Positions 791 to 30,913 of a DNA stretch of 64,000 nucleotides are shown piece after piece. The stretch is taken from the NCBI GenBank assembly GCA_002269645.1, contig NIVC01002482.1, forward strand, positions 62,001 through 126,000. The letters are read 5' to 3'. Below the pieces are notes generated by a model that was not told where the DNA came from, searched no databases, and saw nothing but the letters and a program-made list of their open reading frames with translations. A program made the position numbers and the translations under genes. Source of the DNA: Macrostomum lignano. Taxonomy: Eukaryota. How positions within the stretch are numbered: the first letter of the stretch is position 1; each line of letters opens with the position of its first letter.

Positions 791-1116
791 AAATAACTGT
801 TAGATTTAACCTTCTCCTTAGATCACTTCACACTTCAGATTGAATTGGAGTTTAGACTACTAGCAGTATTATTGAATGACTTCTGCCTCAGCAACAGCAC
901 TACTGAACAAAGTGAGCAAAAGTGTGCGCCTAATTCAGCTACTGAAACAGGGGACAGATAAGGAATCACCCAATCAAGCAAGTCTAGGCAGCCTCTCACC
1001 CAACCAATCAGAAACTCAACAGCCGGAGACCAGGTAATCCACAGCGACCGAATCGGCTTGATGCTTCGCAGCTGTAGACTCGGGATGATGCTGACACAAT
1101 CTTCGCAGATAGCTAG

Positions 1117-1386
1117 TGTTTTGATGGTTCATTCAATAAATTGAGTCTTCGCAGTAAGCGACTATTTTTCGGCTACTAGCCAACCGAACAAAACAACCAG
1201 CGTGCGCACTCTCTCTGGAGAGGCTGATAACTATATATTGCAATAATTTTAAATAAATGGGGTGGGTGCTGCTGAACATTATAAATGGGGGCTGGGGCTG
1301 AAACGTACGTATCAAAATCTCTGCTATGAAAGTTACGCGTAGGTGAATGAAAAGTACACTCGTACATGTAAGCCAACTCCTAAACA
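1117..1386 (-). repeat. 3' LTR of the BEL/Pao element
   Basis: TGTTTTGATGG...CTCCTAAACA, identical to 7880-8149 and adjacent to the PPT. Confidence 0.97.
1130..1172 (-). other. Spliced-leader-like sequence in the 3' LTR
   Basis: The minus strand reads CCGAAAAATAGTCGCTTACTGCGAAGACTCAATTTATTGAATG. My recollection of the Macrostomum lignano SL is CCGTAAAGACGGTCTCTTACTGCGAAGACTCAATTTATTGCATG. 25 contiguous nt are identical and the terminal ATG is kept. The SL is recalled, not retrieved. Confidence 0.85.
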
Positions 1387-1399
1387 TTCCCCCCTTCCT
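1387..1399 (-). promoter_or_regulatory. Polypurine tract (plus-strand primer)
   Basis: AGGAAGGGGGGAA on the minus strand directly abutting the 3' LTR. Confidence 0.9.
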
Positions 1400-1993
1400 G
1401 ACAGAGCAATGTCAGCAACAAAGACCGGAAACACTGAACTTGAGTACCTAGTAACCGAACGGACAAACTATGACCATAGCAAAAAAAAACATACAACGCC
1501 TGGGAACAGCACGAGAAGCGTGAGGGCTCAAAAGAGCTCAAAAGCCAAACTGAAAAGATGTTTCGGCACCCGCCACCAAGACTCGCAAATGAAAACAATG
1601 AAAATGCGCAAGACCGCAAACTGAAATAAGTTACCACTAAACATAAAAAAATATAAAAATTTGCAACTCAGCTTAACTCGCAATTTTAATAAAGTCGAAA
1701 ATGGTTGACAGAAAAAACCCATCACCGTAACTTAACAGAAACTTCAAACAGCTCAAACTCAAAGGAAAAACAAATGCGCCAACTGCGCTCCAAAAAAATC
1801 TGATCCCAAAAAAAACCATGAACAAAAACAGACACAACCAATAATCAAAAAGGCAACGGCTTGAAAAGCCCAAAACTGGCAGAAAGCCTACTGAACGCAC
1901 ACGATACAGTACAAACAATTTGAAAACTCAGCGTAAACTCGGAAAAGTCCGGAAAAGAAAACAAACAGTTCTTAAGCAAATGATCAACTCCTC

Positions 1994-4900
1994 TCACTCG
2001 AGATAGCACAGTTTGCTCACAGGCCGCACGAATACCGTCCCACCGACCTGGACCTTGGCCACCCGGACTCGATTGTCTGAACCTGGGTAGACTTCGACTA
2101 CTCGTCCCAACGGCCAGTGTCCCCGCGGTGAGTCTGCTTTGATGACGAGAACGACATCACCTGGCTGTAAATCACGCTGCGGTCCCGCCCACTTGGCTCT
2201 CGGCTGCAACCCTGGCAGCCATTCGCGCATCCAGCGTCGCCAGACGTGCCTCACGAGTTCTTGGACGCGCCGCCACCGCCGCCTCGGGTCAGCCGCGACG
2301 TCGTCGGGCACATCCGGCGCGAATTGTCCACCAGCTTGACCGTGCAGGAAATGGTTTGGCGTTAGTGGCTCTTCGTCTCTCGGATTCGCCGATTGATAGG
2401 TGATGGGGCGCGAGTTGATAAGCGCCTCCGCTCCAGTGATCGCTGACTGAAGCTCCTCGTCGGTGACATCTGCGCTGCCCAGAATCGCGTGTAGCGCTCG
2501 CTTCGCAGCCCGAATCATCACCTCGTGGGCTCCACCAAAGTGCGGGGCGGCTGGCGGCTGGAAGTTCCACTTGACTCGCTGCTTGGATGTCTCGCGACTG
2601 ATCCTTGTCCTGTCCAGCTCCTCCAGAAGTCGCAGTTCATCTGCACCTTTTACAAAGTTGCCACCGTTGTCAGAATACATAGCCTTGGGTAAGCCACGCC
2701 TGTTCACCATTCGGTAGAAGGCGTTCAAGAAAGAGTCCGCGTCAAGGCTGTAGGTCATCTCGAGGTGTACCGCTCGCGTCTCGAGGCATGTGAACAGCGC
2801 CAAATAGCGTTTCTGCCTCTTCTTAAATCGGCCTTGAATAGTGACGAACGGCCCTCCCATGTCGACGGCTACGTTCGTGAAGGCTTTTAAGGATCCTGCG
2901 ACACGGGCATCAGGCAGTGGCGCCATCTGTTGTACGATGGGACGAGCTTTCTCTCTCTTGCACACAGCGCATTCAACCTCCCACTCGCGAATAGCTTCCC
3001 GAGCACAGATAACCCAATACTTGGCTGACAGCGCCGCCAGAGTTTGGTTAGTCCCACCATGGCTCTGCTGCTCGTGATATTGTTTGATGATCAGCTTGGT
3101 GATCCAATGCTTCCGCGGCAAAATAGATGGATGTCTTGCTGCAAATGGCGCCTGTGGCCTGAATTTCAACCGGCCATCCACTCGTAGGACTCCTGCTGCA
3201 TCACGTACCGGCTGCAAGCACCGCAGCTTCTTCTCGTTCACTGTATCCGTCTTGAACGCTTCCTCCTGAGCTAACCTTACCAAACGCTCCTCGACCTCCT
3301 CGAGCTCATCCACCAACAGCTCACCGCCGCTCCGCTGATACTTCTCCGTCTGACAGTTCCGAATGAACCGCAACACCCAAGCGAAGACGCGCTGCAGTCG
3401 ATGGAAACTAGAGAATCGCTCTGGTTTGAGTCGCCAGCCTGTCTTGTCTTCTTCATCGGTGGTGACCAGACATACGGGCTCTGCACAACGCTTCTGGATG
3501 CTTGCTAGCTCTCTTCGACGGGTATTCGCCTCAGTAGTTTCTGGCGCAACTGGAATCGGCATTTCTGGCCAATCGTTTGAGCACCTCGCCAAGAATCCAG
3601 GGCCGTTCCACCACAGCTCGTTGTCCATCAGCTCTTGCACACTGCAGCCACGGGATGCCACATCCGCTGGATTCAGACCTGTTGGAACGTACCGCCATTG
3701 ATTTGGCTGCACCTGCTGCTGGATGAAGGCGACTCGGTTCGCAACGAAAGGCTTGAACGCTCTACTCTGCCTGCGAATCCACCAAAGCACATTGTGACTG
3801 TCACTCCAAAACACCACAGACTCAATCGCGATCTCCAACGCCTCGGCCACTGCCCTTGCGAGCCGAAGTCCTAGGACTGCCGCCATCAACTCCAGTCGAG
3901 GGATGCTCACCGCCATCAATGGTGCTACCTTAGCCTTTGCAGCAACGAAACGGACCGTCGTCTTACTCATCGTTTCGCTCCGCAGATATACGACGGCTCC
4001 GTAGGCCTCTTGCGATGCGTCTACAAACGAGTGAAGTTCGATGGATCCGTTGTCTGGACGCAGACACCGAGGCACGGCTAGTCTCGTAGCTTTGGAGAGC
4101 TCACTGGTCCACTGAAACGCTTGATCAGCCAACTCAGGATCCAACGCTTCATCCCACCCAACACCTTGTTGCCATGCCAACTGCAGCATTATCTTTCCTG
4201 TGATAACTACCGGAGCTAGGAAGCCACAGGGGTCAAACACCTCGGCCACACCGCGCAAAAGCAGTCTCTTCGTCATCACCTTGCCGCTAGCATTCGACTC
4301 GCTGATGGAAATTCCTAGGACGTCCTCTTTCGCATTCCAATTCACTCCAAGCGCCTTAGCGGTTCGGGCCTCACCTTTCAATAGCAACTCGGCGCGTTCT
4401 GCGCGGTCCTCGACTGGAACGTGTTGCAGCACTTCTAACGAATTCGACATCCATTTGCAAGCTCGCATCCCTGCCTTGCTCCATAATTCTACGAGTTGTT
4501 GGAAGAGTTTCACCGCTTGGCCAACGGTTTCTACGGAGTCTAGACTGTCGTCCATATAAGTGGAATGCAGCACGGTGTTGGCCGCCAGCGGCAGCTGTTG
4601 CTGATAGTGTCGCGCATTCTCCTGTGCCACAAACTGAGCCAGAAACGGAGAGCAGTTTACGCCAAATACCACACTGCAGAACTCATAGCTCTTCGGCGTT
4701 TGCTTCAAGTCTAAGTCTCGCCACAGAAATCGGAAAAATCTTCTGTCCTCCGGCGCAATTCGAACTCTCAGATACATCTCCTCGATGTCGGCTGCTAGCG
4801 CCACGGGATGCTTCCGGAACCGTAGGAGCACCTTTAGCAAATCCTGCTGCAACTTCGGTCCCGTATGAATGGTGTCATTTAGGCAGACCCCATTGCTCCG

Positions 4901-5680
4901 AGCCGCTGCATCAAACACAATTCGAACTTTGGTCGTCTCCTTATCGGCCCGCACTATCGCGAAATGCGGCAAGAACCACTGGCCAGCCTGACTTGGCTCG
5001 CTGATGCCGACCTCCCGCACATAGCCTTTTGCCAGATGCTTGTCTATCACAGCCTGGTACGCCTTCGCTAGCTCCGGGTTCTTCAGCAAGCGCTTTTCTG
5101 TGCTGACGAGACGCTGTAGGGCAGCTTCGTTGTTCATAGGTAGTTCTTCCGGATTCTTTTTCCAAGGAATCGCCACTTGAAACCTGCCGTTCTCCATCTT
5201 CAAGGATGCTCGTGTCGCTTCTACGATCTTTTGATCTTCAGCGGACATTCTGGCCTGCTGTCCTCCATCTGGCACTTCATCGATCTCCCACATCTTCCGC
5301 AGAAGATCAGATGCCTCGTTCTCCGCCGTCACCGTAAAGAATGTCTGCTGCTGCTGCTCTTCTGCAGTTCCTACTTGATTCACTGGTCCAACGCAGGTCC
5401 ACCCAATTGGCGTCAGTCTGGCAATCGGCTCTCCAGGTTGCCCACCTACTTCGCGACAGGCAAAGTGCAAGTCTGCATTGTCCACACCAATGAGCATATC
5501 CACAGTCTGCTTCCCTTTAATTTTGTCGAACGGCACGCCCCTCAGATGAGCCCAACGCTTTGCAAGCTGGCTCCAATCTACGGCTTCCATCCCACCGGTC
5601 ACTTTCTCAGTTGTGTGGGCCGTAACTGTGGCACGAAAGGCGCCGTCCAGACTGCGGATGTCGACCTCAACCGGAACGTC
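1994..5680 (-). CDS. BEL/Pao pol: end of protease, reverse transcriptase, RNase H, integrase
   Basis: 1202-aa ORF, with the frame open upstream to ~5680 (PVEVDIRSLDG...KVTG). Motifs FDAA, ADIEEMYL, YMDD, FVDAS, zinc-binding HH..CC, DMGGP, SDNGGNF, and C-terminal WPLGRVVEVYPGSD. Confidence 0.95.
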   Translation of the reverse strand, partial: DVPVEVDIRSLDGAFRATVTAHTTEKVTGGMEAVDWSQLAKRWAHLRGVPFDKIKGKQTVDMLIGVDNADLHFACREVGGQPGEPIARLTPIGWTCVGPVNQVGTAEEQQQQTFFTVTAENEASDLLRKMWEIDEVPDGGQQARMSAEDQKIVEATRASLKMENGRFQVAIPWKKNPEELPMNNEAALQRLVSTEKRLLKNPELAKAYQAVIDKHLAKGYVREVGISEPSQAGQWFLPHFAIVRADKETTKVRIVFDAAARSNGVCLNDTIHTGPKLQQDLLKVLLRFRKHPVALAADIEEMYLRVRIAPEDRRFFRFLWRDLDLKQTPKSYEFCSVVFGVNCSPFLAQFVAQENARHYQQQLPLAANTVLHSTYMDDSLDSVETVGQAVKLFQQLVELWSKAGMRACKWMSNSLEVLQHVPVEDRAERAELLLKGEARTAKALGVNWNAKEDVLGISISESNASGKVMTKRLLLRGVAEVFDPCGFLAPVVITGKIMLQLAWQQGVGWDEALDPELADQAFQWTSELSKATRLAVPRCLRPDNGSIELHSFVDASQEAYGAVVYLRSETMSKTTVRFVAAKAKVAPLMAVSIPRLELMAAVLGLRLARAVAEALEIAIESVVFWSDSHNVLWWIRRQSRAFKPFVANRVAFIQQQVQPNQWRYVPTGLNPADVASRGCSVQELMDNELWWNGPGFLARCSNDWPEMPIPVAPETTEANTRRRELASIQKRCAEPVCLVTTDEEDKTGWRLKPERFSSFHRLQRVFAWVLRFIRNCQTEKYQRSGGELLVDELEEVEERLVRLAQEEAFKTDTVNEKKLRCLQPVRDAAGVLRVDGRLKFRPQAPFAARHPSILPRKHWITKLIIKQYHEQQSHGGTNQTLAALSAKYWVICAREAIREWEVECAVCKREKARPIVQQMAPLPDARVAGSLKAFTNVAVDMGGPFVTIQGRFKKRQKRYLALFTCLETRAVHLEMTYSLDADSFLNAFYRMVNRRGLPKAMYSDNGGNFVKGADELRLLEELDRTRISRETSKQRVKWNFQPPAAPHFGGAHEVMIRAAKRALHAILGSADVTDEELQSAITGAEALINSRPITYQSANPRDEEPLTPNHFLHGQAGGQFAPDVPDDVAADPRRRWRRVQELVRHVWRRWMREWLPGLQPRAKWAGPQRDLQPGDVVLVIKADSPRGHWPLGRVVEVYPGSDNRVRVAKVQVGGTVFVRPVSKLCYLE

Positions 5681-7131
5681 TGAAAGGTGCTCACCTGGCC
5701 GTTCAGAACCTTTACCGTCATCGGTTCGAGGTTGCCTTCCAAGCCGAGTTCCGCTGCAACGTCAGAGTTCAGGTACGACCGGGTGCTAGCGTCGTCCAGC
5801 AAGACATTCACTCGGACTTCCCGACCGCCGTTGGATAAAATCACGGGCACAGTCCTCAGCGCTATTGACGGCGATGTTCTGGCCAGTAAAGTGCATGCCT
5901 CTTGCGGCTCTTGAACTGTGCTCTTCTTCTCCTGGAAGGACTTTGGTCTTTCGATCGTTTTGGGCGACCCCCCTTCATGCGGATTCGCCGTTGTCGCCGC
6001 CGGCCCTCGTTGATGCAGCAGCCGATTATGGTTTGCTTTGCAGCCATCAACACCGCACACTCTCGCTCGCTTGCACGCACCGGCTAGATGGTTTGCTCCC
6101 AAGCAGCAGAAGCACAGGCGCTTGTCACGAACCGTCGCCCATCTGGCTCCAGGTTCCATTCGTTGAAACCTTGGGCAGCTCCAAACTCCGTGCTGTTCTC
6201 CGCAGAGACCACAACCTTTTCGCCCTTCCGCCTGTTCTTTGTTTTGGCTATTCGAATCATTCGTCTTCACAAAAAACGAGCGTGCTGCGGCTGCCCCTCG
6301 GGAAACAGTTTTCTTGGCTTTTACACTGTCGTGCCGTCCGGTCTCACCGGAAGAAGCCACGCCTCTTACCGCCTCACACGCTACTGTCATGTACTCTGCC
6401 TCCGTCAGAAGCCATCGATGCAACGTTCTGAGCGAATCTTCTTTCCTAGCTTCTCCGATCCACCGATGAAAACGAGCTAGGGTTTCGGTTGGCAGCTTCT
6501 TTTGCACTCTCAAGTACATAAGTCCATTGTTGCTTAGCTCACTCTCTCGCCCTGCAGCCTGTAGATTAACTACCGTAACATCCAGCAAGTCGGCCAGCTT
6601 TTTTAATTGACTTGCATTCTCTATCTGAATAGGTTGGAAACTATCCAAGTCCTCCAGTGCCAGCATCAGTCTTCGTCTCTCTCCACCATACTCCCGCTCA
6701 AGCCTTTCCAGAGCCGCTTTGTAGGCGAACTCCGAGTAGCCAAGATTCGCAACAAGTTTTAATGCCTCTCCTCGCAGCGACTGGCGCAATTGCAACAACT
6801 TATAGGCTTCTGAAGATGGCGAGGCATGCACGCAGGCATAGAAAGCCGCCCGCCATCCTTCAAACTCCCGTTTGTCTCCACTAAACACCGGTATCGCAAC
6901 TCTCTGCAACTGCCTCCACATATCCTGACCGATTCTTTCCTCAGCCCAAGCTTTCGCTGTACATTCTGCTGCGGCGGCCGGTGAAGCCCCAATTGGCGAA
7001 TTAGCTCCACCGTACATAGCTTGGATACCTAGCTGTCCGCGGGGTTGGTTAGAATCAGCGTGGTCACACTTGCCGCCAGTTGGGGTGGGTGGTATTGATT
7101 TTTTTCCGGCCTTTACTCTCTCACCCCTTGC
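5599..7131 (-). CDS. BEL/Pao gag core (DUF1759-like, Cys/His knuckles) and aspartic protease
   Basis: 472-aa ORF, frame open upstream to 7131. Motifs IPVFSGDKREFEGWRAAF, CGLCGEQHGVWSC, CFCCLGANHLAGAC, CGVDGCKANHNRLLH, LLDDASTRSY. Joined to its neighbours by -1 frameshifts. Confidence 0.92.
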   Translation of the reverse strand, partial: ARGERVKAGKKSIPPTPTGGKCDHADSNQPRGQLGIQAMYGGANSPIGASPAAAAECTAKAWAEERIGQDMWRQLQRVAIPVFSGDKREFEGWRAAFYACVHASPSSEAYKLLQLRQSLRGEALKLVANLGYSEFAYKAALERLEREYGGERRRLMLALEDLDSFQPIQIENASQLKKLADLLDVTVVNLQAAGRESELSNNGLMYLRVQKKLPTETLARFHRWIGEARKEDSLRTLHRWLLTEAEYMTVACEAVRGVASSGETGRHDSVKAKKTVSRGAAAARSFFVKTNDSNSQNKEQAEGRKGCGLCGEQHGVWSCPRFQRMEPGARWATVRDKRLCFCCLGANHLAGACKRARVCGVDGCKANHNRLLHQRGPAATTANPHEGGSPKTIERPKSFQEKKSTVQEPQEACTLLARTSPSIALRTVPVILSNGGREVRVNVLLDDASTRSYLNSDVAAELGLEGNLEPMTVKVLNGQVSTFQTFRLRSTSAVWTAPFVPQLRPTQLRK

Positions 7132-7817
7132 TCAGCGCTCCTTAGTTGATCTGACCCTCCCCCAATTAAGGGGTTGACTGAAGGGTCGGCTTGAACCATG
7201 GGGTTGGCGACTGGTACTGAGTACGCAGCTTGCGATTGGACGGCCGCTTCTACCCGTAGTTGAGAGGAGTACAATTGATCATTTGCACTCGCTGACGTCT
7301 CTGCCAGTCTTAGCGCATCCAATCTGACATCTAACTCGCGCTGCCTCTCTGCAAACTCCTGCTGCATTCTGCGCTCCTCCTCCTCCATCTCTATCCGCTG
7401 CCGCCTGACTGCCTCCAACTCCTTCTGTCGCATCTCTTTCTGCTCGATCTCCCTCGACTCTAGTCGCACCTCTCGTTCCCTCTTGCGCAATTCTCTCAGC
7501 AAATTTACAATCTCACCGTACTCAGTCTCCAGCTTTTCCAACTCCTTTACTGTCTGGACTTGCACTGGTAGATTCCCGACGACCTCGGGCAGAATCGCTT
7601 GTAGCACCGCACTAACTCGCTCGTAGTGGTCATCCAGAGTGCCGGCCAGCGGTTCCACGTCCGCTAAAGTAGCTCCGTCCGAGCCCAATACCTTCAGTAG
7701 ACGATTCCGCTGCTTCGTGAACGCGCACTTGTCGACCGCTTTTCTGGCCTTCAGCAAAATGAGACGGCTGTCTCCCTCCGGCACTTGTTCTTGCATCTCT
7801 GCTTCTTCATCAGACAT
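7113..7817 (-). CDS. N-terminal coiled-coil part of BEL/Pao gag
   Basis: 234-aa ORF starting just downstream of the PBS; E/R/Q-rich coiled coil; overlaps the next frame at 7116-7131. Confidence 0.85.
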   Translation of the reverse strand: MSDEEAEMQEQVPEGDSRLILLKARKAVDKCAFTKQRNRLLKVLGSDGATLADVEPLAGTLDDHYERVSAVLQAILPEVVGNLPVQVQTVKELEKLETEYGEIVNLLRELRKREREVRLESREIEQKEMRQKELEAVRRQRIEMEEEERRMQQEFAERQRELDVRLDALRLAETSASANDQLYSSQLRVEAAVQSQAAYSVPVANPMVQADPSVNPLIGGGSDQLRSAEQGVRE

Positions 7818-7859
7818 CTTTTACCAATGAAGTAGAACCACAAGTAGAACCACAAGTAG

Positions 7860-7877
7860 AACCACGCTCTGCTACCA
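7860..7877 (-). promoter_or_regulatory. Primer-binding site complementary to the 3' end of initiator tRNA-Met
   Basis: TGGTAGCAGAGCGTGGTT, 2 nt from the 5' LTR. TGGTAGCAGAG is the complement of the conserved tRNA-iMet 3' end CUCUGCUACCA. Confidence 0.88.
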
Positions 7878-7879
7878 GA

Positions 7880-8149
7880 TGTTTTGATGGTTCATTCAAT
7901 AAATTGAGTCTTCGCAGTAAGCGACTATTTTTCGGCTACTAGCCAACCGAACAAAACAACCAGCGTGCGCACTCTCTCTGGAGAGGCTGATAACTATATA
8001 TTGCAATAATTTTAAATAAATGGGGTGGGTGCTGCTGAACATTATAAATGGGGGCTGGGGCTGAAACGTACGTATCAAAATCTCTGCTATGAAAGTTACG
8101 CGTAGGTGAATGAAAAGTACACTCGTACATGTAAGCCAACTCCTAAACA
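7880..8149 (-). repeat. 5' LTR of the BEL/Pao element
   Basis: Identical to 1117-1386; adjacent to the PBS; followed by TSD GCTAG. Confidence 0.97.
7893..7935 (-). other. Spliced-leader-like sequence in the 5' LTR
   Basis: Same 43-nt SL-like string as 1130-1172. The 25-nt identical core is at 7897-7921, and the ATG is 13 nt from the LTR end. Confidence 0.85.
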
Positions 8150-8319
8150 GCTAGTAGGTGATGTCTTAACTTTGATGTTCGCTGCTGGTGACCGGGGGAC
8201 TCGTCCTTGATGATGAGGGGGAAGTCGCAATCCGGGGATCAAGAAACGACGGTCGGGCTGAGGGAACCAGAAATATTGGGAGAGAGCCGGTTGAGGTCCG
8301 AGCGGGCCAAAAACACCGG

Positions 8320-15237: not shown

Positions 15238-15818
15238 CAGGGGCGTAGCCAGAGGGGGGGCAAGGGGGCCGTGGCCCCCCCCCCCAATCACCAACTCTGG
15301 CCTTGGCGCCCCCCCCCCTAAAAGAAACTGGCGCCCCTATAAGAAACTGGCGCCTCCCACTAAAAGAAACTGGCGCCCCTATAAGAAACTGGCGCCTCCC
15401 ACTAAAAGAAACTGGCGCCCACCTCCTAAAAGAAACTGGCGCCCCCCACTAAAAGAAACTGGCGCCCCCCACTAAAAGAAACTGGCGCCCCCCCCACTAA
15501 AAGAAACTGGCGCCCCCCTCCTAAAACTGGCGCCCCCTCCTAAAACTGGCGCCCCCTAAAAAAACTGGCGCCCCCTAAAAAAACTGGCGCCATTCCCTCC
15601 TTAAAATTGCGCCCCCTAAAAGAAACTGGCGCCCCCCCCTAAAAGAAACTGGCGCCCCCCCCGTAAAAGAAACTGGCGCCCTCCCTAAAAGAAACTGGCG
15701 CTACCCCTATAAGAAGCTGGCGCCCCCCTATAAGAAGCTGGCGCCCCCCCTATAAGAAGCTGGCGCCCCCTAACTCACGGCCCCCCCTCCCCAATCAAAA
15801 TTCCTGGCTACGCCCCTG
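15238..15818. mobile_element. hAT-type MITE containing an internal ~22-bp minisatellite
   Basis: TIRs CAGGGGCGTAGCCAG / CTGGCTACGCCCCTG, perfect 8-bp TSD GTTGTGAT, internal AAAAGAAACTGGCGCCCCCC repeats. Confidence 0.9.
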
Positions 15819-16284
15819 GTTGTGATTCATAATAATTCGAAATACAACATACATATAGTATTAATGTACGATTTCCAGGGTATTAGTTCCATTCAGGGAT
15901 TTTATTCGGTTATATTCAATATGAGAGCGAGTTAATGCCGGGAAATCGTTTGTCTATATATCTTATACGAACTATTATGCAAATACCTTCCCCCCAACAA
16001 AAGCAGGTTAAATCTTCTACATAACTTCGTATTAAAAGAAAATATTCCTCGTAAAAGTATTAGTTGAAACGCGTCGCTAAAATACAAATCTGACAAACAG
16101 ACCTTTTAACAAAATCAAGTTCAATCAAAACTTGACACCCATCTAATAAACGACAATTCGTTTCCCAACTAAACCTACATTTCATCTACCTAAAATTAGC
16201 TTTGCATTCCCTATAAAAACACATGTATAGCTACACTCCAGTCGGGCTGAAAGACCAACATCGTTCAGACCTCAGCAGCCGCGT

Positions 16285-16575
16285 TCACGCCGCCCCAGAC
16301 ACAAGCCGGTCCATGATCTGCTGCAACGACATCGACTTCATATCCTCGATCTCCTGGTTTACGAACGCTTTGTCTTCGTCCGACATGCCTTCCATGAACT
16401 TTTCAACGTCCATGGATCCGGCCAACATGCCCTCCGTTTCCTCTGCGTCCAGCTCCACTCCGGACTCCGCTAGCCACTTCTTCATGTCCGCCGCCATTTT
16501 GTCCAGTGCGTCCATGCCATCGTCTTCCTCTTCTTCTTCGTCCTCATCTTCGTCTTCATCCTCTTCCGCTTTCTT

Positions 16576-16608
<33 letters not shown>

Positions 16609-17232
16609 ATCCTCGTCTTCTTCTTCGTCTTCATCTTCCTCGTCGACTTTTGCTGGCACCCCGGACGCTTGTTCTTCTTCTTCTTCGTCTTCGTCTTCGT
16701 CTTCATCCTCGTCCTCATCCTCAGCCGCTGCTGCTGCTGGCTTAGCCGGCTCTTCTTCGTCTTCGTCTTCATCTTCTTCATCCTCATCTTCATCATCATC
16801 CTCAGCTGCCGCTGGCTTGGCCGGCTCAGCTTTCTCTTCTTCCTCTTCATCATCTTCATCCTCATCCTCATCCTCATCCTCGTCATCAGCTGCCGCTGCC
16901 GCTGGCTTGGCTGGCTCAGCTTCATCCTCCTCATCTTCTTCATCTTCTTCTTCATCTTCGTCTTCGTCTTCCTCCTTTTTAGCGGCGGTGGCAGCGGCCG
17001 GTTTCTCTTCTTCTTCATCTTCGTCGTCTTCCTCATCCTCATCGTCCTCATCAGCATCCTGGTCAGCAGCGGGTTTCTTAGCGTCCGTTTTCTGCTCTTC
17101 TTCTTCTTCTTCGTCCTCTTCGTCCTCGTCGTCTTCTTCATCTTCCTCTTTTTGCACTGGCGGCGGCGGCTCTATTTTCTTGCTGTCCTCTTCTTTGGTC
17201 TTCTTTGCAGCGTCAGTTTTCTTGTCCGCCAT
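16285..17232 (-). CDS. Orphan hyper-acidic low-complexity protein (315 aa), single exon
   Basis: ATG in good context; D/E tracts separated by repeated (EPA)KPAAA spacers; non-repetitive ~75-aa C-terminus with coding-like codon use; candidate AATAAA at 15901-15906. Confidence 0.75.
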
Positions 17233-17396
17233 GCCTTCTCGATTGCCGAATTGAGAAACAAGCGTGAGCGAGAGGGGCTATCGAATCACTACGGGTTTCT
17301 GCTCACATCTCCGTGACTTAACTGGGGAGCGGCTGCCTACACCGACTTGAAATAGGCCAACCCCGCGTCCCCACCAACCCCGCGTCCCCATCTGCA

Positions 17397-18838
17397 ACTC
17401 TGCTGCAGATGTCGTCAACGACATCTGCAGCAGAGTCCTGTCCCGCTGCCGCATGCTGTCCTGCCTCGCGGCTCGGGACTGGGGTTGGCGCAAGGAGCGC
17501 CTTCGCGGCGTCTACCTGGCTATGCAGCAGAGCCTTCTTAACTACGCGGCCCCGGCTTGGCAACCTTGGCTTTCCAGCACCTCCTTCGAGCGCCTTGAGC
17601 GCGCGCAAAACCAGGCCCTCAGAATCGTCACGGGCTTGCACCGCTCGGCGCCGCTTGACGCTGTGCACCTGGAGGCCGGCATCGGCAGCTACAGGAACAC
17701 CAGCGACCGCCTTTGCCTCATCGCCAGGGAACGCGCGCTCAGGCTGCCCAACGACCATCCTCGCGCCATCGCCCTCTCGGGCACCGTGCAACACCGGCTC
17801 GCCCGCAGTAGCTGGAGACTCCGCTCGGCTCAGCTTGCCAATGGCCTTGGCATTGATCTCACGCCGCGTCTGCCGCTCACACCGGCCTTCCCATGCCCCT
17901 GGCTGGACCAACATCTTCCGGCGATCCTAGCTGACAATCCTTTGCCTCCGGCCACCACGCCCCCGTTGGAGCGCTGTCTTGCCGCTCTCGACGTCATCCG
18001 GTCTCACCCGGCTGAGCTCGTCATTTACTGCGATGGTTCGGCGGCCGGCGGCTCCGAGGCTGGCGGGGCGGCCGCTGTGGTCACCATCGGAGACCCGGCA
18101 GTCCCGACGACCGTGGAAGCCCGCACGTCCGCTGGCAGCCGCTACACCAGCTCCTTTGAAGAGGAACTCCGCGCTCTGGTCCTAGCCCTCGACTACCTCC
18201 GCTCGCACCCCACGCGCCCTGCCATCATCTGCTCTGACAGTCAGTCTCTTCTGCGCGCCCTTCAGCGTCCCTTCAGCCGCCTGGCCTCTTCCCTCCGCTT
18301 CCCGCACAACTGCCGCGCTCTCCTGTGGGTCCCGGGTCATGTCGGCATTCCGGGCAATGAACTCGCGGACCGCGCTGCTAACTCCGCTGCCGCCAACGCC
18401 GATGAAGCACCGCGCCCCAGCATCAGTTTTCCCACTGCCGCCTCGGTGATCCGCCGCACTCTGGTTGACAAGCCGGTCACCCACGCGAGATCTCGTCTCA
18501 CCTATGCCTCCGCCGACGCCGAAAAGGAACGTCGGCTTATTACTAACCGCAAAGACGCTGTCCTTCTTGCCCGGCTGCGCTCCGGCCACTCCAGCCTCTT
18601 CGGAGCCTTCCGCGCCCTCATGGACCCCACGGTGGATCCGACGTGCCAAAGGTGCTTCCTCGAACCAGACACCCTTGAGCACTGGACAGCGTGCCCTGCT
18701 CTCGAGGCCGCCCGCCGTCGCTTCATTGGAGCTCCGCTCTCCCTCAGCAACTTGTCCGATTACCCTGATGGTTTGGTCGCGCTGGCCAGGTTCTGCATGG
18801 ATCCTGGGCGCGTTTGGGCCAACTAACAACAACAACAA
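17397..18838 (+). mobile_element. 5'-truncated I-group (I/Nimb/Ingi-like) LINE with (AAC)n tail
   Basis: Retains the RT C-terminus, RNase H and CCHC knuckle; the stop codon runs into AACAACAACAA; candidate TSD TCCCCACCA (~17369-17377, 18839-18847). Confidence 0.9.
17453..18826 (+). CDS. LINE ORF2 C-terminal fragment: RT thumb, RNase H, zinc knuckle
   Basis: DWGW...YAAPAW...LERAQNQALRIVTG; IYCDGS, EELRAL, SDSQS, WVPGHVGIPGNELAD; LARLRSGH, CQRC-x8-H-x3-C. Confidence 0.92.
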   Translation: MLSCLAARDWGWRKERLRGVYLAMQQSLLNYAAPAWQPWLSSTSFERLERAQNQALRIVTGLHRSAPLDAVHLEAGIGSYRNTSDRLCLIARERALRLPNDHPRAIALSGTVQHRLARSSWRLRSAQLANGLGIDLTPRLPLTPAFPCPWLDQHLPAILADNPLPPATTPPLERCLAALDVIRSHPAELVIYCDGSAAGGSEAGGAAAVVTIGDPAVPTTVEARTSAGSRYTSSFEEELRALVLALDYLRSHPTRPAIICSDSQSLLRALQRPFSRLASSLRFPHNCRALLWVPGHVGIPGNELADRAANSAAANADEAPRPSISFPTAASVIRRTLVDKPVTHARSRLTYASADAEKERRLITNRKDAVLLARLRSGHSSLFGAFRALMDPTVDPTCQRCFLEPDTLEHWTACPALEAARRRFIGAPLSLSNLSDYPDGLVALARFCMDPGRVWAN

Positions 18839-19774
18839 TCCCCACCAGCAAGCCACCGTTCCCCAAGCCGAGCATTCCACTCTGCTCAGGCAAATTGCTT
18901 TCCTTCCCCATGCAGCAGAGAGACGGGCATGGCGGGAGGGGGTTAAAGGGGAAAAACTCTCCCCCATCGTCCCAGCGTCCCCTTGTCTTTGAGGAGGGAG
19001 CTCCCAGGACTCTATGGGAGCGACAGGCGGAGCTGCTGCAGGCCAGCCAACTCTGCGGTTGCTGCACGTCGCAAAAGGGGGGGGGGCGATGGAGTTTTGA
19101 AGGCGGCTGGGGACCGGACAGCCACCCCTCTCACTAAGCAACCTGTTCATTGTTCTTCTGCCTCCGTCAGCCTGCAGGACCTCCTCTATTTCCTTCCAAA
19201 ATTTTCTGCCCCATCTCTTCCTCCTTCGTCATGAAGCGGCACGGGAAGCTGGAGAGCAGCATGGCTGCAAATTAAAAAACACAGCGTAAGGTGAGTAGGA
19301 AGGGTTTGTCCGCTGCCGGACGCTGCAACTCAGACATTCAATTATTAGAACTTCCAGCGGGCTGAATATTTGATTAGAAAATACGAGAATGCGGAGCGAC
19401 TGCCAGTGTCAGCGCAGAGCAGGGGGTGGTACTTAAAGGGACTCAAACTGCTTATTCGGCTCATTTTGGCAACTTGGAGGAGGAGAGCGATGGGGTGGCT
19501 GGCCGGGCTGCTGAGGACTCGGCAACGGGCATTGTTTGTTGCTTTGTTGAGTCAAAGCCTGTCGGGCACGTCCGTTGCCATGGCCAGTCAGCCACCCCCC
19601 TGCTCAACTTGAAGGGCGAGAGAAGCCTTAGTTACCTGTTTTAACTGTACGATTGCAAGCTCAGGCCATGCATGCTCTGAATCCTCTGGTCTGGGATCGG
19701 ATATCAACTTAGCAGAAACTTTTCTAAGCTTAAAGTTCTAATACCTCGATGCGAAATTGTTCAGGGAAATATGG

Positions 19775-20760
19775 GTAGCTTCAGGGTACTATGGGTAGCT
19801 TCAGGGTAATACGGGTAGCTTCAGGGTAATATGAGAAGCTTCAGGGTAATATGGGTAGCTTCAGGGTAATATGGGTAGCTTCAGGGTAATATGGGTAGCT
19901 ACGGGGTAATATGGGTAGCTTCAGGGTAATATGGGTAGCTACGGGGTAATATGGGTAGCTTCAGGGTAATATGGGTAGCTTCAGGGGAATATGGGTAGCT
20001 TCAGGGTAATATGGGTAGCTTCAGGGAAATATGGGTAGCTTCAGGGTACTATGGGTAGCTTCAGGGTAATATGGGTAGCTTTGGGGTAACATGGGTAGCT
20101 TCAGAGTAATATGGGTAGCTTCAGGGTACTATGGGTAGCTTTAGGGTAATATGGGTAGCTTCAGTGGAATATGGATAGCTTCAGGGTACTATGGGTACCT
20201 TTAGGGTATTACGGGTAGCTTCAGGGTATTACGGGTAGCTTCAGGGTGATATGGATAGCTTCAGGGTATTACGGGTAGCTTCAGGGTATTACGGGTAGCT
20301 TCAGGGTAATATGGGTAGCTTTGGGGTAACATGGGTAGCTTCAGAGTAATATGGGTAGCTTCAGGGTACTATGGGTAGCTTTAGGGTAATATGGGTAGCT
20401 TCAGTGGAATATGGATAGCTTCAGGGTACTATGGGTACCTTTAGGGTATTACGGGTAGCTTCAGGGTATTACGGGTAGCTTCAGGGTGATATGGATAGCT
20501 TCAGGGTATTACGGGTAGCTTCAGGGTATTACGGGTAGCTTCAGGGAAATATGGATAGCTTCAGGGTAATACGGGTAGTTTCAGGGTACTATGGGTGGCT
20601 TCAGGGTATTATGGGTAGTGTCAGTGGAATATGGGTAGCTTTAGGAAATATGGGTAGCTTCAGGGGAATAAGGGTAGCTTCAGGGTATTACGGGTAGCTT
20701 CAGGGTATTACGGGTAGCTTCAGGGGAATATGGGTTACTTCAGGGAATATGAGCAGCGTC
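19775..20760. repeat. 20-bp minisatellite (ATGGGTAGCTTCAGGGTAAT)n
   Basis: Direct tandem repeats; the variant pattern recurs at 240 bp (e.g. TTGGGGTAAC at 20081 and 20321). Confidence 0.97.
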
Positions 20761-21345
20761 AGGGGGAATACAGCATTCCTATTTCTCTACTATAGGTAGA
20801 ATCAAGAGAAATATGTGGGACTTTTATACAGCCACAGTTACAGCAACAGCAGGCAATCAAAAGCAGTGTACTAAATTTTTTGATAAGAACGAGGCGCTAA
20901 AGTTTTGAGGAGTTGATTATTCACAATAGAGTTTTGTCAAAGGGATTTTTTTGTGCCTGTGACGAACGCCTTTGATATACAGTGCGTTTGAGTTGCTAGG
21001 AGATTGTTGGTTTCTATAGCTCTCCAAAATCTCGATATATTGCATAAATTTGAACATGATCAAAGGCTTATGGTAATTTGACCATTGATCTGATAAACAA
21101 ATATTCTTGGATGGTTATGATATTATTTTGTCTTTTCTTTACGGAGTGCGCAGTTGAAATTGTCTGGCATCAAGCCATGAATGAAATAATGGCAGGGATT
21201 GCACTGAAATGGATTCTTTACTTTCGTTTAAAAATGTCTTGAAAAATAATTATTTCATAATTATGATATAAAAATACAGAAATAGTGCATTTGATAGCTA
21301 ATTGTAATTATAATTTAAATAGACTTATTCGTGTATTAAAAAGTG

Positions 21346-22210
<865 letters not shown>

Positions 22211-22333: not shown

Positions 22334-25300
22334 CTAAGCGGAGCTCATCTGCTCCAGCTGCCTCAGCCGCTCGCGCCGGGTACGCAGCACCTTCTGGTCC
22401 CAGTCAGGCAGACTCTGCACCAGGTGGTTGGTCACGTGACGGTGCCCCAGGACCATCTGGCCATTGGCGTTGCTGGCGGGGCACTGCTTGGTTTTAACGA
22501 GAACGCGACTGCCTCGGAGACGCGGCTTCTGTATCTCCACGTCCTTTCGGATTCGAAGCAGGCGGGTAGAATGGAATTCAGTTGGTGCAATAAATTTATG
22601 GAAATTAACTTAAAATTATCCCCTCAACTCAATCTGTGATACTCAGTATCTCCCCTCAACTCAATCCGTGATACTCAGTATCTCCCCTCAACTCAATCCG
22701 TGATACTCAGTATCTTCCCCTCAACTCAATTCGAGTTTCCGCCATCTAAAGTAAAAGTTCCCAGTCCAATCAGACTGTCCATTTCTTACCGGCAGTCGCA
22801 GAAGAGGCTCCACATGCGGCTTTTGACCTTTGACGTTGCCGCCAATGCCACCGCCAACCGCGCCGACGCCGGGTCTACGATAAACAACACCTGCTGTATC
22901 CGTGCAGAAGGCTTCAATGCGACGCTCAATCAGGCGCAGGTGCGCTTTGGACAATTCGAAATCCGTCAGCAGTCGGGGCACGCCAGAGTTCGAGGTTGTC
23001 CAGGCGGCACTCGGAGGTGCATTGGCGGCGCCTGCTGAGTCACCAGGCCCTTTGCCAGCATCAGTCGGGCGGAAGGCCGCTCTGTTGGCCTCGTTGGCAG
23101 CGAAAGCAGCAGCAGGCTGTCGATATTCTGAGTGGAGGCAAGGACAAGTATTCAATCTTAAAATTTAAAATTTGGAATTAATTTTTTTGTTTCTCTCAAA
23201 AATGTAGACGTTTTGCGCGGCGGATGCTTTCTCGTTGAGTGTTCGCCCGTCGATTGCTTTCTCGTTGGGTGTTCGCCCGTCGGATGCTTTCCCGTTGGGT
23301 GTTCGCCCGTCGGATGCTTTCCCGTTGGGTGTTCGCCCGTCGGATGCTTTCTCGTTGAGTGTTCGCCCGTCGATTGCTTTCTCGTTGGGTGTTCGCCCGT
23401 CGGATGCTTTCCCGTTGGGTGTTCGCCCGTCGGATGCTTTCCCGTTGGGTGTTCGCCCGTCGGATGCTTTCCCGTTGGGTGTTCGCCCGTCGGATGCTTT
23501 CCCGTTGGGTGTTCGCCCGTCGGATGTTTTCCCGCTGGGTGTTCGCCCGTCGGATGTTTGTCCGCTGGGTGTTCGCCCGTCGGATGTTTGTCCGTTGGGT
23601 GTTCGCTCATCGGATGTTTGCCCGCCGCACATTTCCCAGCTACAATATTCTTCAATAGTTCAAGTTTAGCCCAGCCTAGCCTTCCCTTAATTTGCTTCCT
23701 TAACACGAGAATACTTTGCTCTTGAAGATTTTTTACTGTATGTTTTATGCGATTTTCAGTACACAGTCACTTTTGTGCAAATAAATATTCAAATAATTTA
23801 AGTTTGACACCGACTTAAAATTGTTCTTAATTTTAAACTCAGTGTAAGATTCGAACGATTCTAGAAAGATTTAATCATCAAAGAAGCTTGAAACGAAACT
23901 GTTTACTGCATAAGACAGACGAAATTTCGATACTATACCTGCTGAAATTACGAATAATCATTCCCACTTGCATTAAGAGGATCCACAACAATACAAGTAC
24001 AAGCGAATCTACAAGCTACATCTGATAGACGCGTACAAAAAGCTGCACCAATCACTCCGACCAGATGAATTTTCAGCTACTACGGTGTACAAACGTCGGC
24101 GGGGCAAACGTCTCGCTGCCAAAATTCTCCACCCCTTCAGGATATTTGCGAGCCAAAGATGCCAAAAAGTCTTGCGTTTTATGTTTCTACTAAGGAACTG
24201 TTAAATATCTCGACGGCCTCGAATATCGCCGAGTTAAAAAACTTGCTCGCAAAATCGAGACAATTTTGTAGAATTGTGGAACTGAGCGTCCGATTTTTCA
24301 CCCAAATTAATTGCCAAAAAATACAAGCTACGCTAGCCAAACAGCATATCACTGATGCTTTGATACCTTTACAGTTGTTTCTTTTCAAGTTCACCCATTA
24401 TCTTAGACGAGACAAAGAAGACATTTCTTTTTGTTTGAAGAGTAGGAAATGTTGCGGGCCATTCCTCCTTTAAAGTTGGGTATGAGTTCTACTTAACTGC
24501 GAAAAAATAGTGCTGATTTAGTGTATCGTCTTTGCTCCATCCGGGTTACGCGATGAAAGCCAGTCGAAAAAGATTTTTAAAGCATCTAACTGTTGATCAA
24601 TCAGCCTTCCAGGAATTTTATCTAAATATTTTATCCACTCAGAGCTCCATTTTTCAACAGAAATCAAAATCAGGCCGCTCACCCAGACCCGAGACTATTC
24701 CTTTCTCGGATGCTTCCAGTTCGCGTTGCAACAGCCGGCGACTCCTAGGGACCGTGCGCCGCCGCTGCTGCTGCTGCTGCTGCCACATCTTCAACTGCGG
24801 CTGCCCGCTGTCCAGCTCAGACTCCCTGGCCTCTTCCTCATCTTCGTTCTGAAGCGACGCGACCAGTTTAGCCGGCCTCGATCGCTCTCGAAGATGCCGC
24901 CTGCGCTCCGCATTCACCCGGCACAGGTGGCGATAGTAGAGCGACGCATCGGCCGGAGCCGGACCCAGCTGGCTGCGGCCCTCCACGTACATGGCCAGCA
25001 TGTGCTGCCAGAGCAGGTCGCCAGGCGGCGGCTGCTTGCGCGTGTGCATCAGCCAAGCCTGGCGTTGTTGCTGCTGCAGCTGGCGCTGCTCCTCGCCTGC
25101 TGCCACGGGATCTGTGGAAGCCGCGGTTGCTGCGGCTGCAGCCGCGGCTACTGCCGCTGCCGCCGCGGCACCGCCCGCAATTCGAGGATCCTGGCCGAGT
25201 CGACGCATCAGAGGGGCCCGACGTGAACGAGACTGCAGACGGAGCAGGATCGTTTGGCGCAGCTGGGCCAGAGCGCCGCGGTTGCGAGACAGCAGTCGGC

Positions 25301-28300
25301 GACAATTGGCGCGATTCAGCCAGTAGCCGTAGGTGTTGTCGACGCTTATTGCAGTTGTGAGACTCTCGCCTAAACTTGCGAGCAGCTCCACTTGCCCGAG
25401 AATCTCGCCCTCGCCTAGCAAGGCAATCTCGACCTGACGACTGCGCTGCCTCTGCTCAGCAGCCTGGTAGCCCTGACGATGTCGAAGCAGTCCCGCCTGC
25501 ACGGCCGCTGCAGCCGGAGCCGGAGTCGCTGCCGGCGCCGCTGAAGATTGTTCGTCCTTCTCTGACTTCTGGATGCTCGCCGGCCACCTGATTGGATCGG
25601 CGAGCAGCTTCACGGATCCTCTTGACAGATGGGAAATGAATGCACTTTGCTTTATTCTGGTTCGCTCCTAGAATCAAATTTCTCGGTTTTATTTTTTACG
25701 TTTGTTTCCCTACATAGAAGCATATTTTAACGAGACTTGAGTTTGAAGGCAAAGTTGCACCTGAATTTGGACTTATTGTCATGGCAACTACCGGTTGTCT
25801 ATCAAGGCCCCCGTAGACGAAAAAATTCAACAGGTCTACTATTTTTCCTCTCTCCCCCTGGAGCAGGCTTTCTCATTGCACTGGGAGGCTCACCCCAAAC
25901 CCATAGCAGTGTCTGAATGGTCGGGTGGTCAGCAGTGCGGCCTCCACCACCCCCGCCCCTTACTGGGGATCATGCAGCCAGGTATCAGCAACAGTAGAGG
26001 CAGTTTTTGGGAGCCGGGAAATTTCAGCTGAGGTGGTGGAAGCAACCGGAGCAAGCATTGTCTTGCAGCAGCAATGCTTGGGATACGAGGATATACCTAC
26101 ACTTGCTAACCATGCACGCATTGGAAACACGTGACAACTTCACGTTTCTCACGTCCATTTATTGAAGCACACTTCTGCATCCTAAACCTGGCATGATTAC
26201 TCTGAAATTCAACTACCTCGCAGCTGTCAGATCCTAAGTGGAGATGCTTCAAAATTAATATCCGGGTATTTAAAGTTTGAGTATACCGTACGTGAAGCCG
26301 GGTGTAATTCGGGTTTGTGAATTTTGTAGATTTTGAAACGCCCTCCTCGAAAATGGGACGATGTCATGTCACCGAAGGCTTTGCGCCAGGTGCCCGCAGC
26401 CATAAAATTATCATATATTACAATATTATAGCTATTAAGTGGATGGACTCGCTTCCTCACCCAACAATAAAGAACAGGCCTCCGCTCTTCTGTCCCTGCT
26501 GCACAATCGGCTCGCCGTATCCGTACACCTCCTTGTGCAGGCTGTTGCGCAGGCTCTGCCGCTGCTTCGGTCGCCAGTTGACGAACACAGGGCAGGTGTC
26601 TATGAAGCTCTCGATCATCTGGTACTCCTGCAGCTGGTAGGCTTTAAGAGTTCTAGCAAATGACACCTGGTGAATTACTAGCACTGCGACATCCTCATCG
26701 CAGATGACGGACGCCTTACGGATGCTGTTAGGACTGGTGAGGGCGATCTCGCCGAATGCGTAGCCCTCGCCCATCTGCAGCACGTGAGCGCCTAGCAAGC
26801 GGCTGCGCAACTCTTCTGCGTCCTCGCCGTGACTGGCTAATTTATTAGCATCATCGAGGAAGGCCAAGTCCACATCCTCGTCGGCATCTTCCGCATCCGC
26901 CTCTGGGTCCCGATCCGCTTGGTTGGGACCCCCTGCGCCTGAAGCTGAGGCGTCGGCAGCAGTGACAGACTCCGAGGCCTGCTCGGCATCGCTGTTGACA
27001 TACACGGAGACGCGTCCGGTGATCACCAGGTAGAAACTGTGGCCCTTCTCGCCCTGCCGAATGATCAGCTCATTGGCATGGAAACGCTGCAGGTGGCAGT
27101 CGCGAACGATTTCTCGAATAGCGTCTGGAAAGATTTTTTAACGAGTTGAAATCACAAATGCTAGAATAACTAGATGGGCCACTCAACACATTTGCGTGCA
27201 AGCTACTTTCAGTTCAGTAGCAAGTTAAACTGAAGCATTTTAATGTATTTTTAAAGACAAAGATTACAGGCTGCGTATTTACGAGTTATTGGCTCTTACC
27301 CCCCCCCCCATTTTAAACATTCAAACTCCACTCAAAACCTTTACCCCTGCCCCGCCACCCAATTTTTTTACTTTCCCCGGTTGTTCGAGCCTAAATCTGC
27401 CATGTACATTTCAGTGGCTTATCATGTACATTATGGTTGAACCAATTAGCAAGCTGTTAACGCCTGCAAGCTTGGGCTTCTGAACTTATCAAAGTCATCT
27501 CAGCTGCCTTTATTCTTATAAAATAGCTTAGGTATTCTTCATTGCTACTGAAATGAAAGTAGAAAGCTGTTTTGCTAGGTATTTATGCCTGAGTGGCCAA
27601 TCGAGTCATATTCTAGTATCTGAGGTTGAAATTGAGTTCGAGACCCCGAGTTTGATTCATAAACAACTGAAGTAAGTAGGACGCTACAGTCGATTTTGTT
27701 TGAAGTTACTTTTCAAAAAGGGTTGCAGACTAGTGGTTAGAGCGTCGGACTCGCGAATGAAAGGTCGGGGGTTCGATTCTTGACCCACTCGGAACAATTT
27801 GTGTCTTTGAGCAAGACACTTGACTCTGCATTGCTTCAGTTCAACCCAGCTGTAAAATGGGTGCCAGCATTAGCTGGGGTAATTGGGAGTGTGTGTGGCG
27901 ACCCCCCAGTCCTTGGACTGAACAGCCGTACGCAGCTTTCAGATGCGCAATAGCTGGAGTTTGTCACGTCGGGCACTCATGCCTAGCTGAAAGTGCGCAT
28001 AAAAAGGCAGGACCGCCGTACACCCACCCTGTGTGAGCGTGTGCCTGCGTACATATCCGAGTTCGTGCTCAAAGGGTCAGCAAACTCGGAATGACTGCTT
28101 GCCTCCTGGCTGGCTGCTTGTCGACTTTCGCCATTGAGTTGCGGCACATGACCAAAGCCTCTCTGTATTTTTTCTACATGGCGATAGATTTCAACCGACA
28201 ATGCAAACTTTTCGCACTGATTTCTTTTCTTTACAATGCCTGCACAGTCGGTACATGAACTCTCAGACTTCTTGAAACACAAGTGGGCTCCCCCTGCACT

Positions 28301-30417: not shown

Positions 30418-30913
30418 TGCTGATTTCTTCTTGGCAGGTCAAGTCAGTTGGGTCACGACTCGGGGTGAATTCGCTAAGCTTAATTAAATGAGTAGCGCAA
30501 ACATGTCTTTTTTGAGCTGCCCTTACCTCTCGCGCTTCACTCGCCTTGGCCAAGTCAACTTTACGAGCGGTTTAAATACACAAAAAGCACAGGCGCAAGC
30601 ACAGTCCTTTAGATTAAGGCTTGATCTTCGGCATATCGTTATTCGCTATCTCATCTCTGCCATATGGCTCGGCCAAGCAGCCTGCGTGCATGGCGTCAAG
30701 GTTTGAGTTGTGCTCACATTATTATCTTGGTCGGCTCACCCGCTCAGGACTCGACTTTTGGGCTCAATTTCGGTTGCCATGGAGATCCGAATTTTTTGCG
30801 CTATTTTCTCTCTCTCTCTTTCTAGGTAAGTTATGGTAGGATAGCATTTTAATAGTTCTGATTTATTTATGGGCCAATAAGATGTGCGTGCTCGAGCATG
30901 AGGAATGACAACG

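Follow-up and report, generated by a model that had tools for sequence, protein, structure and literature searches.

The 64,000-nucleotide (nt) stretch of Macrostomum lignano DNA analysed here (contig NIVC01002482.1, positions 62,001 to 126,000; hereafter the window) contains a BEL/Pao long terminal repeat (LTR) retrotransposon on its minus strand, and each of the two LTRs carries a 44-nt block which, on its sequence, is a copy of the Macrostomum spliced leader (SL) exon. The homology runs from the first nucleotide of the leader to its terminal ATG and stops there, and the block is absent from the two related elements in which the 3' end of the LTR can be read. We consider, with a probability of about 0.7, that the block is a retro-copied SL exon which is now a fixed component of the LTRs of this family, that it came from reverse transcription of a trans-spliced RNA, and that it now persists mainly as a tolerated relic.

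The SL block and the limits of its homology

A first-pass annotation of the window had matched the M. lignano SL to the LTR end, and the SL sequence that it gave agrees with the published ones: the 35-nt SL of M. lignano is CGGTCTCTTACTGCGAAGACTCAATTTATTGCATG (PMC8629364), whilst that of M. cliftonense is GCCGTAAAGACGGTCTCTTACTGCGAAGACTCAATTTATTGCATG and that of M. hystrix is identical to the latter minus the leading GC (PMC10468722 supplement). Alignment of the block to the published 35-mer gives 31 identities in 35 positions and bears out the claimed match at the SL 3' end, where 28 of the last 29 nt are identical and 25 of these are contiguous. Over the whole exon, from GCCG at +1 to the terminal ATG, local alignment with an environmental SL RNA gene (L009, described below) returns 39 identities in 45 positions, with five mismatches and one gap. 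The core 25-mer occurs exactly at 7897-7921 and 1134-1158 and nowhere else in the window, and was found in 0 of 100 dinucleotide-preserving shuffles. The span first annotated, 7860-7935, takes in the primer-binding site (PBS), a spacer and the end of the unique 5' (U5) region as well as the leader sequence; the block alone occupies 7893-7936. Five of the six differences from the SL lie within the first 17 nt (Fisher p = 0.023, a post hoc figure since the partition was picked after seeing the data), a clustering which is suggestive, though not strong, evidence either that the 3' part is constrained or that an error-prone transfer took place at the border between the unique 3' (U3) and repeat (R) regions.

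We scanned public collections with a 20-23-nt SL core. Five metatranscriptome contigs (L003, L004, L006, L007 and L010) have the SL at the 5' end with a different mRNA after it in every case (5/5), and two genuine SL RNA genes were found, one in a metagenome (L009, 615-730) and one on a contig of a Flavobacteriaceae metagenome-assembled genome (MAG; L012, 1589-1700, JAGQZA010000190.1). The 20-mer matches in L005 and L008 proved to be unrelated sequence. In both genes a 45-nt exon is followed by GTAAGACACC, stem-loops and the Sm site AUUUUUAG, and the L009 transcript folds into the canonical three hairpins with AUUUUUAG (z = -2.8). The two exons are identical, whereas the introns and flanks differ, with intron substitutions falling in the stem-loops. 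As a separate observation, the presence of a complete Macrostomum-type SL RNA gene within a bacterial MAG represents eukaryotic contamination of that bin.

When the LTR and its flanks were aligned locally with the L009 gene region, the homology returned was the exon exactly. After the ATG the LTR reads AACCATC where the SL genes read GTAAGAC, so the GT donor is absent from the LTR; GTAAG also stands directly 3' of the exon in the published M. lignano SL RNA gene (PMC8629364). The Sm site, the SL intron and its flanking stem-loops are likewise absent after the ATG in the LTR leader. Upstream of the block, the LTR flank is no more similar to the 213 nt preceding the SL genes than shuffled sequence is, as 278-302 of 500 shuffles scored at least as high as the real alignment for L009 and 194 of 500 for L012. 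Because the homology covers +1 to the ATG and the flanks are unrelated, the block is a copy of the mature spliced exon and not of an SL gene, and these exact exon boundaries provide what we regard as the strongest evidence for the proposed capture route.

The first-pass annotation had also suggested that the element could borrow an SL-gene promoter. This part did not hold, as U3 has no similarity to the regions upstream of L009 and L012. Strings resembling GGTTGGCTAG do precede the SL both in the LTR and in the two genes, but they lie at differing distances from it and the whole-flank scores are at shuffle level, so this candidate was rejected.

Relatives and the search for further copies

Relatives of the element's pol were sought among 5.8 billion proteins, and the best of them share its domain architecture. 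The nearest two, at 64% (P0001, on contig L001) and 58% identity (P0002, on L002), come from one JGI metagenome (L002 being JGI 3300040801) and are followed at 46% by P0003 on L011 (ENA ERZ25069866). L001 ends inside its own LTR, the 3' end of which is not covered. In L002 the order is pol, CAGGAAGGGGGGAA, an LTR of ~350 nt ending in ...CTTACGAACA, a spacer, TGGTAGCAGAGCGTGGTT and gag, and in L011 it is GAGGAGGGGAAGAA, an LTR ending in ...GCATCGCAAGAACA, TT and TGGTAGCAGAGCGAGGTT. Both relatives therefore have a polypurine tract (PPT), an LTR that ends in ...AACA, a short spacer and a PBS of the initiator methionine tRNA (iMet) type. They resemble the element in their G-rich PPT (identical in L002), TG...ACA LTRs, short spacer, PBS (identical in L002, one mismatch in L011), DUF1759 gag and Pao pol, but their LTRs cannot be aligned with those of the element except at the extreme ends, and neither relative contains an SL block or any SL-like sequence. 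The 13 nt that follow the block in our element resemble the LTR ends of L011 and L002 and therefore look like the ancestral end of U5. The comparison points to the block as a lineage-specific acquisition just upstream of that end.

Further copies of the block were not recovered. The metagenome scan with the SL core returned SL genes and trans-spliced mRNAs but zero LTR copies, the scan of genome contigs yielded one further SL gene only and no LTR copy, and neither the pol scan nor the SL 20-mer matched anything in viral contigs. The window itself holds one copy of the element and zero solo LTRs.

Proposed route and age of the capture

Capture through a trans-spliced RNA, as the first-pass annotation had already proposed, is the route that best fits a homology confined to the exon, +1 to ATG, and lacking GTAAG, the Sm site and any similarity upstream. 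The SL would have been joined by trans-splicing to an ancestral genomic RNA, at a U5 acceptor lying 13 nt upstream of the end of the LTR and 15 nt upstream of the PBS. Reverse transcriptase (RT), primed at the iMet PBS, would then have copied those 13 nt followed by the whole 44-45-nt SL as far as the cap. An aberrant first-strand transfer or template switch, with little or no homology or guided by microhomology, would have linked the strong-stop DNA to LTR sequence from further upstream, the target being either the 3' end of the RNA or the U5 of a co-packaged full-length RNA, after which normal plus-strand transfer would have put the block into both LTRs. The acceptor site would have been lost during capture, such that present transcripts are not expected to be trans-spliced there, and the family would have kept replicating with the block in place. 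The first of these steps finds support in Hydra, another SL-using animal, where the RNAs of transposable elements are substrates for SL addition (PMC12220107). The Hydra case differs from ours in that the SL is added to the RNA and is not described as encoded in the DNA of the elements (PMC12220107).

Among three published species and the two environmental SL genes, the introns of which differ, the SL exon does not vary, and for this reason the six differences of the LTR copy are best read as divergence after capture. Set against 0 differences in 270 positions between the two LTRs, 6 differences in 45 from the SL would place the capture long before the insertion of this copy, unless a variant SL gene has escaped detection in the host. 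The insertion itself is very recent.

Probable position of the block in the RNA

Each base of an LTR enters the genomic RNA at one of its two ends. Were the block to lie in U3, R and U5 together would be left with ≤13 nt, which is implausible, and so the block should lie in R or U5 and thus in the 5' leader of the RNA. A transcription start downstream of the block, which would keep it out of the RNA, had been named at the outset as fatal to the proposal; the argument just given answers this point by logic, not by data. The layout then put forward, with a U3 of 213 nt, an R equal to the SL and a U5 of 13 nt, is arithmetic and not evidence. The sense LTR contains neither AATAAA nor ATTAAA; an AATATA (LTR 148-153), a CA (183-184) and a GU-rich run (188-207), all upstream of the block, look like a poly(A) signal, a cleavage site and a downstream element. 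The most probable location of the block is not at the cap but some tens of nt 3' of it. Because of these motif positions, and because the simplest capture route would leave the old R upstream, we lean towards an SL internal to the leader (in U5 or late in R), a placing that, judged from motifs only, seems somewhat better than an even bet. On the same motif-level reading, an SL at the extreme 5' end of the transcript appears doubtful.

The block adds leader sequence and a short upstream open reading frame (uORF) that opens at the SL ATG, and we take it to be mainly a tolerated passenger. The uORF ends 54 nt upstream of the ORF1 AUG. It had been described as in frame with gag, and it is indeed in phase with the ORF1 ATG at 7817, but this has no consequence, since the TAG in the PBS closes it.

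Alternative explanations

The alternative that survives best is adaptive mimicry, in which transcription would start at SL +1, R would be the SL and U5 the 13 nt, and the element's RNAs would pass as trans-spliced, gaining in translation, export or escape from surveillance. It is in keeping with this that the full exon has been kept from +1 to the AUG, that the 3' 29 nt are conserved (28/29) where the 5' part has drifted, and that the family evidently replicated with the block. First-strand transfer is error-prone in retroviral replication, and changes clustered at a U3/R border would fit such a step. However, there is no TATA-like motif 25-35 nt upstream of the block, the nearest lying 64 nt (LTR 148-156) and ~110 nt (LTR 102-108) upstream, and no canonical poly(A) signal that would set cleavage at the block end. 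U3, as described above, does not resemble the upstream regions of the two SL genes, and under the simplest capture route the former R stays 5' of the SL. Genuine SL RNAs have a trimethylguanosine (TMG) cap, whereas an LTR transcript made by RNA polymerase II would carry a 7-methylguanosine (m7G) cap. The hairpin part of the SL has decayed, and the structure predicted for the leader is not significant (z = -1.06). We therefore regard mimicry as unlikely, and rate as a shade less probable still that selection keeps the block because host factors treat the element's mRNAs as trans-spliced (in translation, export or stability) or because it shields them from small-RNA defences. The benefits proposed in the first-pass annotation, namely export, translation and evasion, find no evidence in this analysis, and a benefit from resembling trans-spliced mRNA is unproven.

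A different source for the same sequence would be a template switch by RT onto free SL, either the step-1 exon intermediate or the SL-bearing 5' end of a host mRNA that had been trans-spliced and co-packaged. The exon boundaries would be identical and equally exact, and switching of RT onto abundant small RNAs is known from other retroelements, as in the chimeras of L1 and U6. It would, however, need two non-homologous switches against one, and the resemblance of the 13 nt after the block to the U5 ends of the relatives is what would be expected from splicing to the element's own U5. We consider it improbable.

Capture at the DNA level, through recombination with an SL RNA gene or insertion beside one, is very improbable indeed, and nothing speaks for it beyond the presence of the SL sequence itself. 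The GTAAG donor, the Sm site, the stem-loops and any upstream homology are all absent, and the element, bounded by a target-site duplication (TSD) of its own, has the block within each LTR. The window contains no SL gene and no Rfam matches, and the DNA outside the TSD does not belong to an SL gene, so the element is not inserted in an SL RNA gene. The likelihood of chance resemblance, or of an assembly or cDNA-chimera artefact, is negligible given a 25-nt exact match found in none of the shuffles, the extended identity of 39/45, an identical block in two LTRs 6.8 kb apart and TSD, PPT and PBS junctions that are all correct.

Several points nevertheless weigh against the view that the block is a retro-copied exon carried as a tolerated relic. 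This view rests on a single copy of the family, with neither a parental acceptor site nor a block-less sister lineage from the same genome for comparison, and the proposed capture depends on a rare kind of strand transfer, one that proceeds in the absence of the usual R homology. As all but one of the six differences fall in the first 17 nt, the 3' 29 nt may be constrained, in which case the block could be more than a passenger. Finally, gag and pol lie in three frames, as set out below, compared with one or two open reading frames (ORFs) in the relatives, and this copy may be non-autonomous.

Structure of the element

The identification of the element as a BEL-family LTR retrotransposon, made in the first-pass annotation, is borne out by its domains, LTRs, TSD, PPT and PBS (Table 1). 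It has TG...CA LTRs with a TSD, a PBS and a PPT, a gag with DUF1759 and the expected pol domains, and the Pfam matches within it are PF03564, PF00078, PF05380 (E 2.5e-48), PF17921 and PF18701. Direct-repeat comparison shows the two LTRs to be 100% identical (0/270 differences). Direct reading of the minus strand likewise agrees with the earlier description of an LTR end, a 2-nt gap (TC, 7879-7878) and a tRNA-iMet PBS. No tRNA genes were found in the window. Only ~45 nt of leader separate the PBS from the ORF1 ATG; three tandem copies of GTGGTTCTACTT lie at 7830..7865 on the minus strand, the first overlapping the last 6 nt of the PBS, and these could have arisen from RT slippage or from re-priming at the PBS edge.

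Table 1. Coordinates, in the window, of the BEL/Pao element and its parts.
Feature	Position	Strand	Remarks
BEL/Pao LTR retrotransposon, whole	1117-8149	-	7,033 bp
TSD CTAGC (element sense), upstream copy	8150..8154	.	direct reading
5' LTR	7880..8149	-	270 nt, TGTTTAGG...AAAACA; ends TG...CA read directly
TATA-like / variant poly(A)-signal-like motif AATATATAG	7994..8002 (LTR 148-156)	-	64 nt upstream of block; putative function, from motif position
SL-exon-derived block GCCGAAAAATAGTCGCTTACTGCGAAGACTCAATTTATTGAATG, 5' LTR	7893..7936 (7936->7893)	-	44 nt; LTR positions 214-257
LTR terminus AACCATCAAAACA	7880..7892 (7892->7880)	-	13 nt; likened to LTR ends of L011 and L002
uORF MNHQNIW*, 7 codons	7872..7895 (7895->7872)	-	ATG AAC CAT CAA AAC ATC TGG TAG; opened by SL ATG, closed by TAG in PBS
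PBS TGGTAGCAGAGCGTGGTT, tRNA-iMet-type acceptor end	7860..7877 (7877->7860)	-	direct reading
ORF1, gag N-terminal part, 234 aa	7113..7817 (open 7820-7113)	-	ATG at 7817; aligns with L002 gag
ORF2, gag core, DUF1759 + zinc-knuckle region	5599..7131	-	first ATG 7017; 57% identical to L002 gag
pol open frame: RVT_1, Peptidase_A17/Pao, integrase H2C2, DUF5641	1994..5761	-	Pfam search
PPT GGAAGGGGGGAA	1387..1398	-	adjoins 3' LTR; identical PPT in relative L002
3' LTR	1117..1386	-	270 nt; direct-repeat comparison
SL-exon-derived block, 3' LTR	1130..1173 (1173->1130)	-	identical to 5' LTR block
TSD CTAGC, downstream copy	1112..1116	.	direct reading

Three minus-strand ORFs lie between the LTRs. ORF1 has zero Pfam matches, and a protein database search returned no homologue of it other than the L002 gag, with residues 12-117 of which it shares 33% identity (E 1e-8); exact-protein look-ups of ORF1 and ORF2 returned no record. 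The frames of ORF1 and ORF2 differ, with a 19-nt overlap at 7131-7113, and pol is reached from ORF2 only through a -1 frame change near 5692-5674. A canonical slippery heptamer is absent at both junctions; a G4 run lies inside the ORF1/ORF2 overlap and an A7 run just past the ORF1 stop. In the relatives the arrangement is simpler, as the single gag ORF of L002 spans the counterparts of both ORF1 and ORF2, four others (P0004, P0005, P0007 and P0012) have one gag-pol ORF each, and L011 has gag and pol as separate, overlapping genes. Either the family recodes, or one or two frameshifts have arisen in this copy, which would have been mobilised in trans.

Other features of the window

Away from the element, three tandem and apparently intronless KIF3A-like kinesin ORFs lie on the minus strand (38149-40227, 41138-42304 and 43584-45653), the middle one truncated at its N-terminus; the best database match, at ~64% identity, is in a sipunculan. 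They could be retrogene-derived tandem paralogues, and no SL relic was found upstream of any of the three. A 457-amino-acid ORF on the plus strand (17453-18826) has an RNase H domain (PF00075, E 1e-11), adjoins an acidic, Ser-rich repeat with a 9-nt period (16223-17254) and may be the remnant of another retroelement. A GDSL-lipase-like ORF (46223-46948, minus strand, E 5e-18) and a fragment of a cyclic-nucleotide-binding domain (26457-27026, minus strand) are probably exons of host genes. Minisatellites are very dense, with periods of 17-80 nt and up to 87 copies, in arrays at 15312-15770, 19760-20764, 21347-22209, 23221-23624, 28398-30218, 37060-37810, 53032-53233, 54285-55361 and 57183-57761, and the repeats include a (CAGA)n array of 860 bp. 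Several of the arrays yield long spurious ORFs on both strands, for example at 28339-30487.

Discussion

That SL relics arise by retro-copying is known, and what is new here is an SL relic inside the LTR of a retrotransposon. Relict spliced leaders in dinoflagellate retrogenes were reportedly described by Slamovits and Keeling in 2008. Relict copies of the dinoflagellate SL (DinoSL) are documented at the 5' ends of retrogenes in that group (PMC5585692, PMC6050394, PMC3229502). As in those relics, the SL in our element is encoded in the genome and joined without an intron to the downstream sequence, the homology stops at the trans-splice junction, and the copy would have been made by reverse transcription of a trans-spliced RNA and have decayed after integration. 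The dinoflagellate relics differ in that they derive from host mRNAs copied by machinery acting in trans, whereas here the leader lies in a retrotransposon's own LTR, is present at both ends, would be propagated with each cycle, and occurs in an animal.

The site-specific non-LTR retrotransposons of trypanosomatid SL RNA genes, SLACS, CZAR and CRE, are also physically tied to SL sequence, and their transcripts can carry SL-derived 5' bases. These elements, however, insert into SL RNA genes and use the promoter found there, whilst in our case the exon lies inside the LTR, outside any SL gene and with no homology to an SL promoter. Closer to home, the LTRs of M. lignano retrotransposons have independently gained heat-shock elements, in a study that lists five Bel/Pao families (PMC12801592). 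Those LTRs offer a parallel from the same genus of LTRs gaining host-type features, but the features are short motifs that evolved in U3 and whose function was shown by transgenesis, as opposed to a 44-nt host RNA apparently copied wholesale, and the SL goes unmentioned in that paper (PMC12801592). In Echinococcus, cis-splicing from an LTR to an acceptor has been reported. Full-text literature searches found no published account of an LTR that contains an SL, and no indexed paper has the variant string GAAGACTCAATTTATTGAATG.

Genome-encoded copies of this kind matter for annotation, as they can mislead both the use of SL reads to call trans-spliced genes and searches for SL RNA genes. The published search for M. 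lignano SL genes required a 100% match to the 35-mer (PMC8629364) and would miss the LTR copy because it matches at 31 of 35 positions. The first-published M. lignano SL RNA 'gene' was itself a mis-assignment, as the sequence belongs to a protein-coding gene with trans-spliced mRNA and maps at its 5' end (PMC8629364). Given that this sequence is found in the genome, Macrostomum may well have further encoded SL copies, which could be retrogenes.

If the block were in fact maintained by selection, a retrotransposon would be mimicking host mRNA in a new way, and small-RNA defences could not target the element there without hitting every trans-spliced host mRNA. On the reading that we favour, of a retro-copied and mainly tolerated exon, the interest of the block is chiefly as a molecular fossil and an experimental handle. 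It would show directly, at the sequence level, that an autonomous LTR retrotransposon had its genomic RNA SL trans-spliced and that this RNA still completed reverse transcription and integration, and also that a host RNA 5' end can become the core around which an LTR is rebuilt. It also offers a natural marker for the effect that the SL sequence alone, without the TMG cap, has on the fate of flatworm mRNAs, particularly as RNA-seq can distinguish leaders encoded in the LTR from those added by trans-splicing (for example by TTGAATG against TTGCATG, with GTCGC as another diagnostic variant of the encoded copy). The same relic could be sought in the LTRs of other phyla that use spliced leaders.
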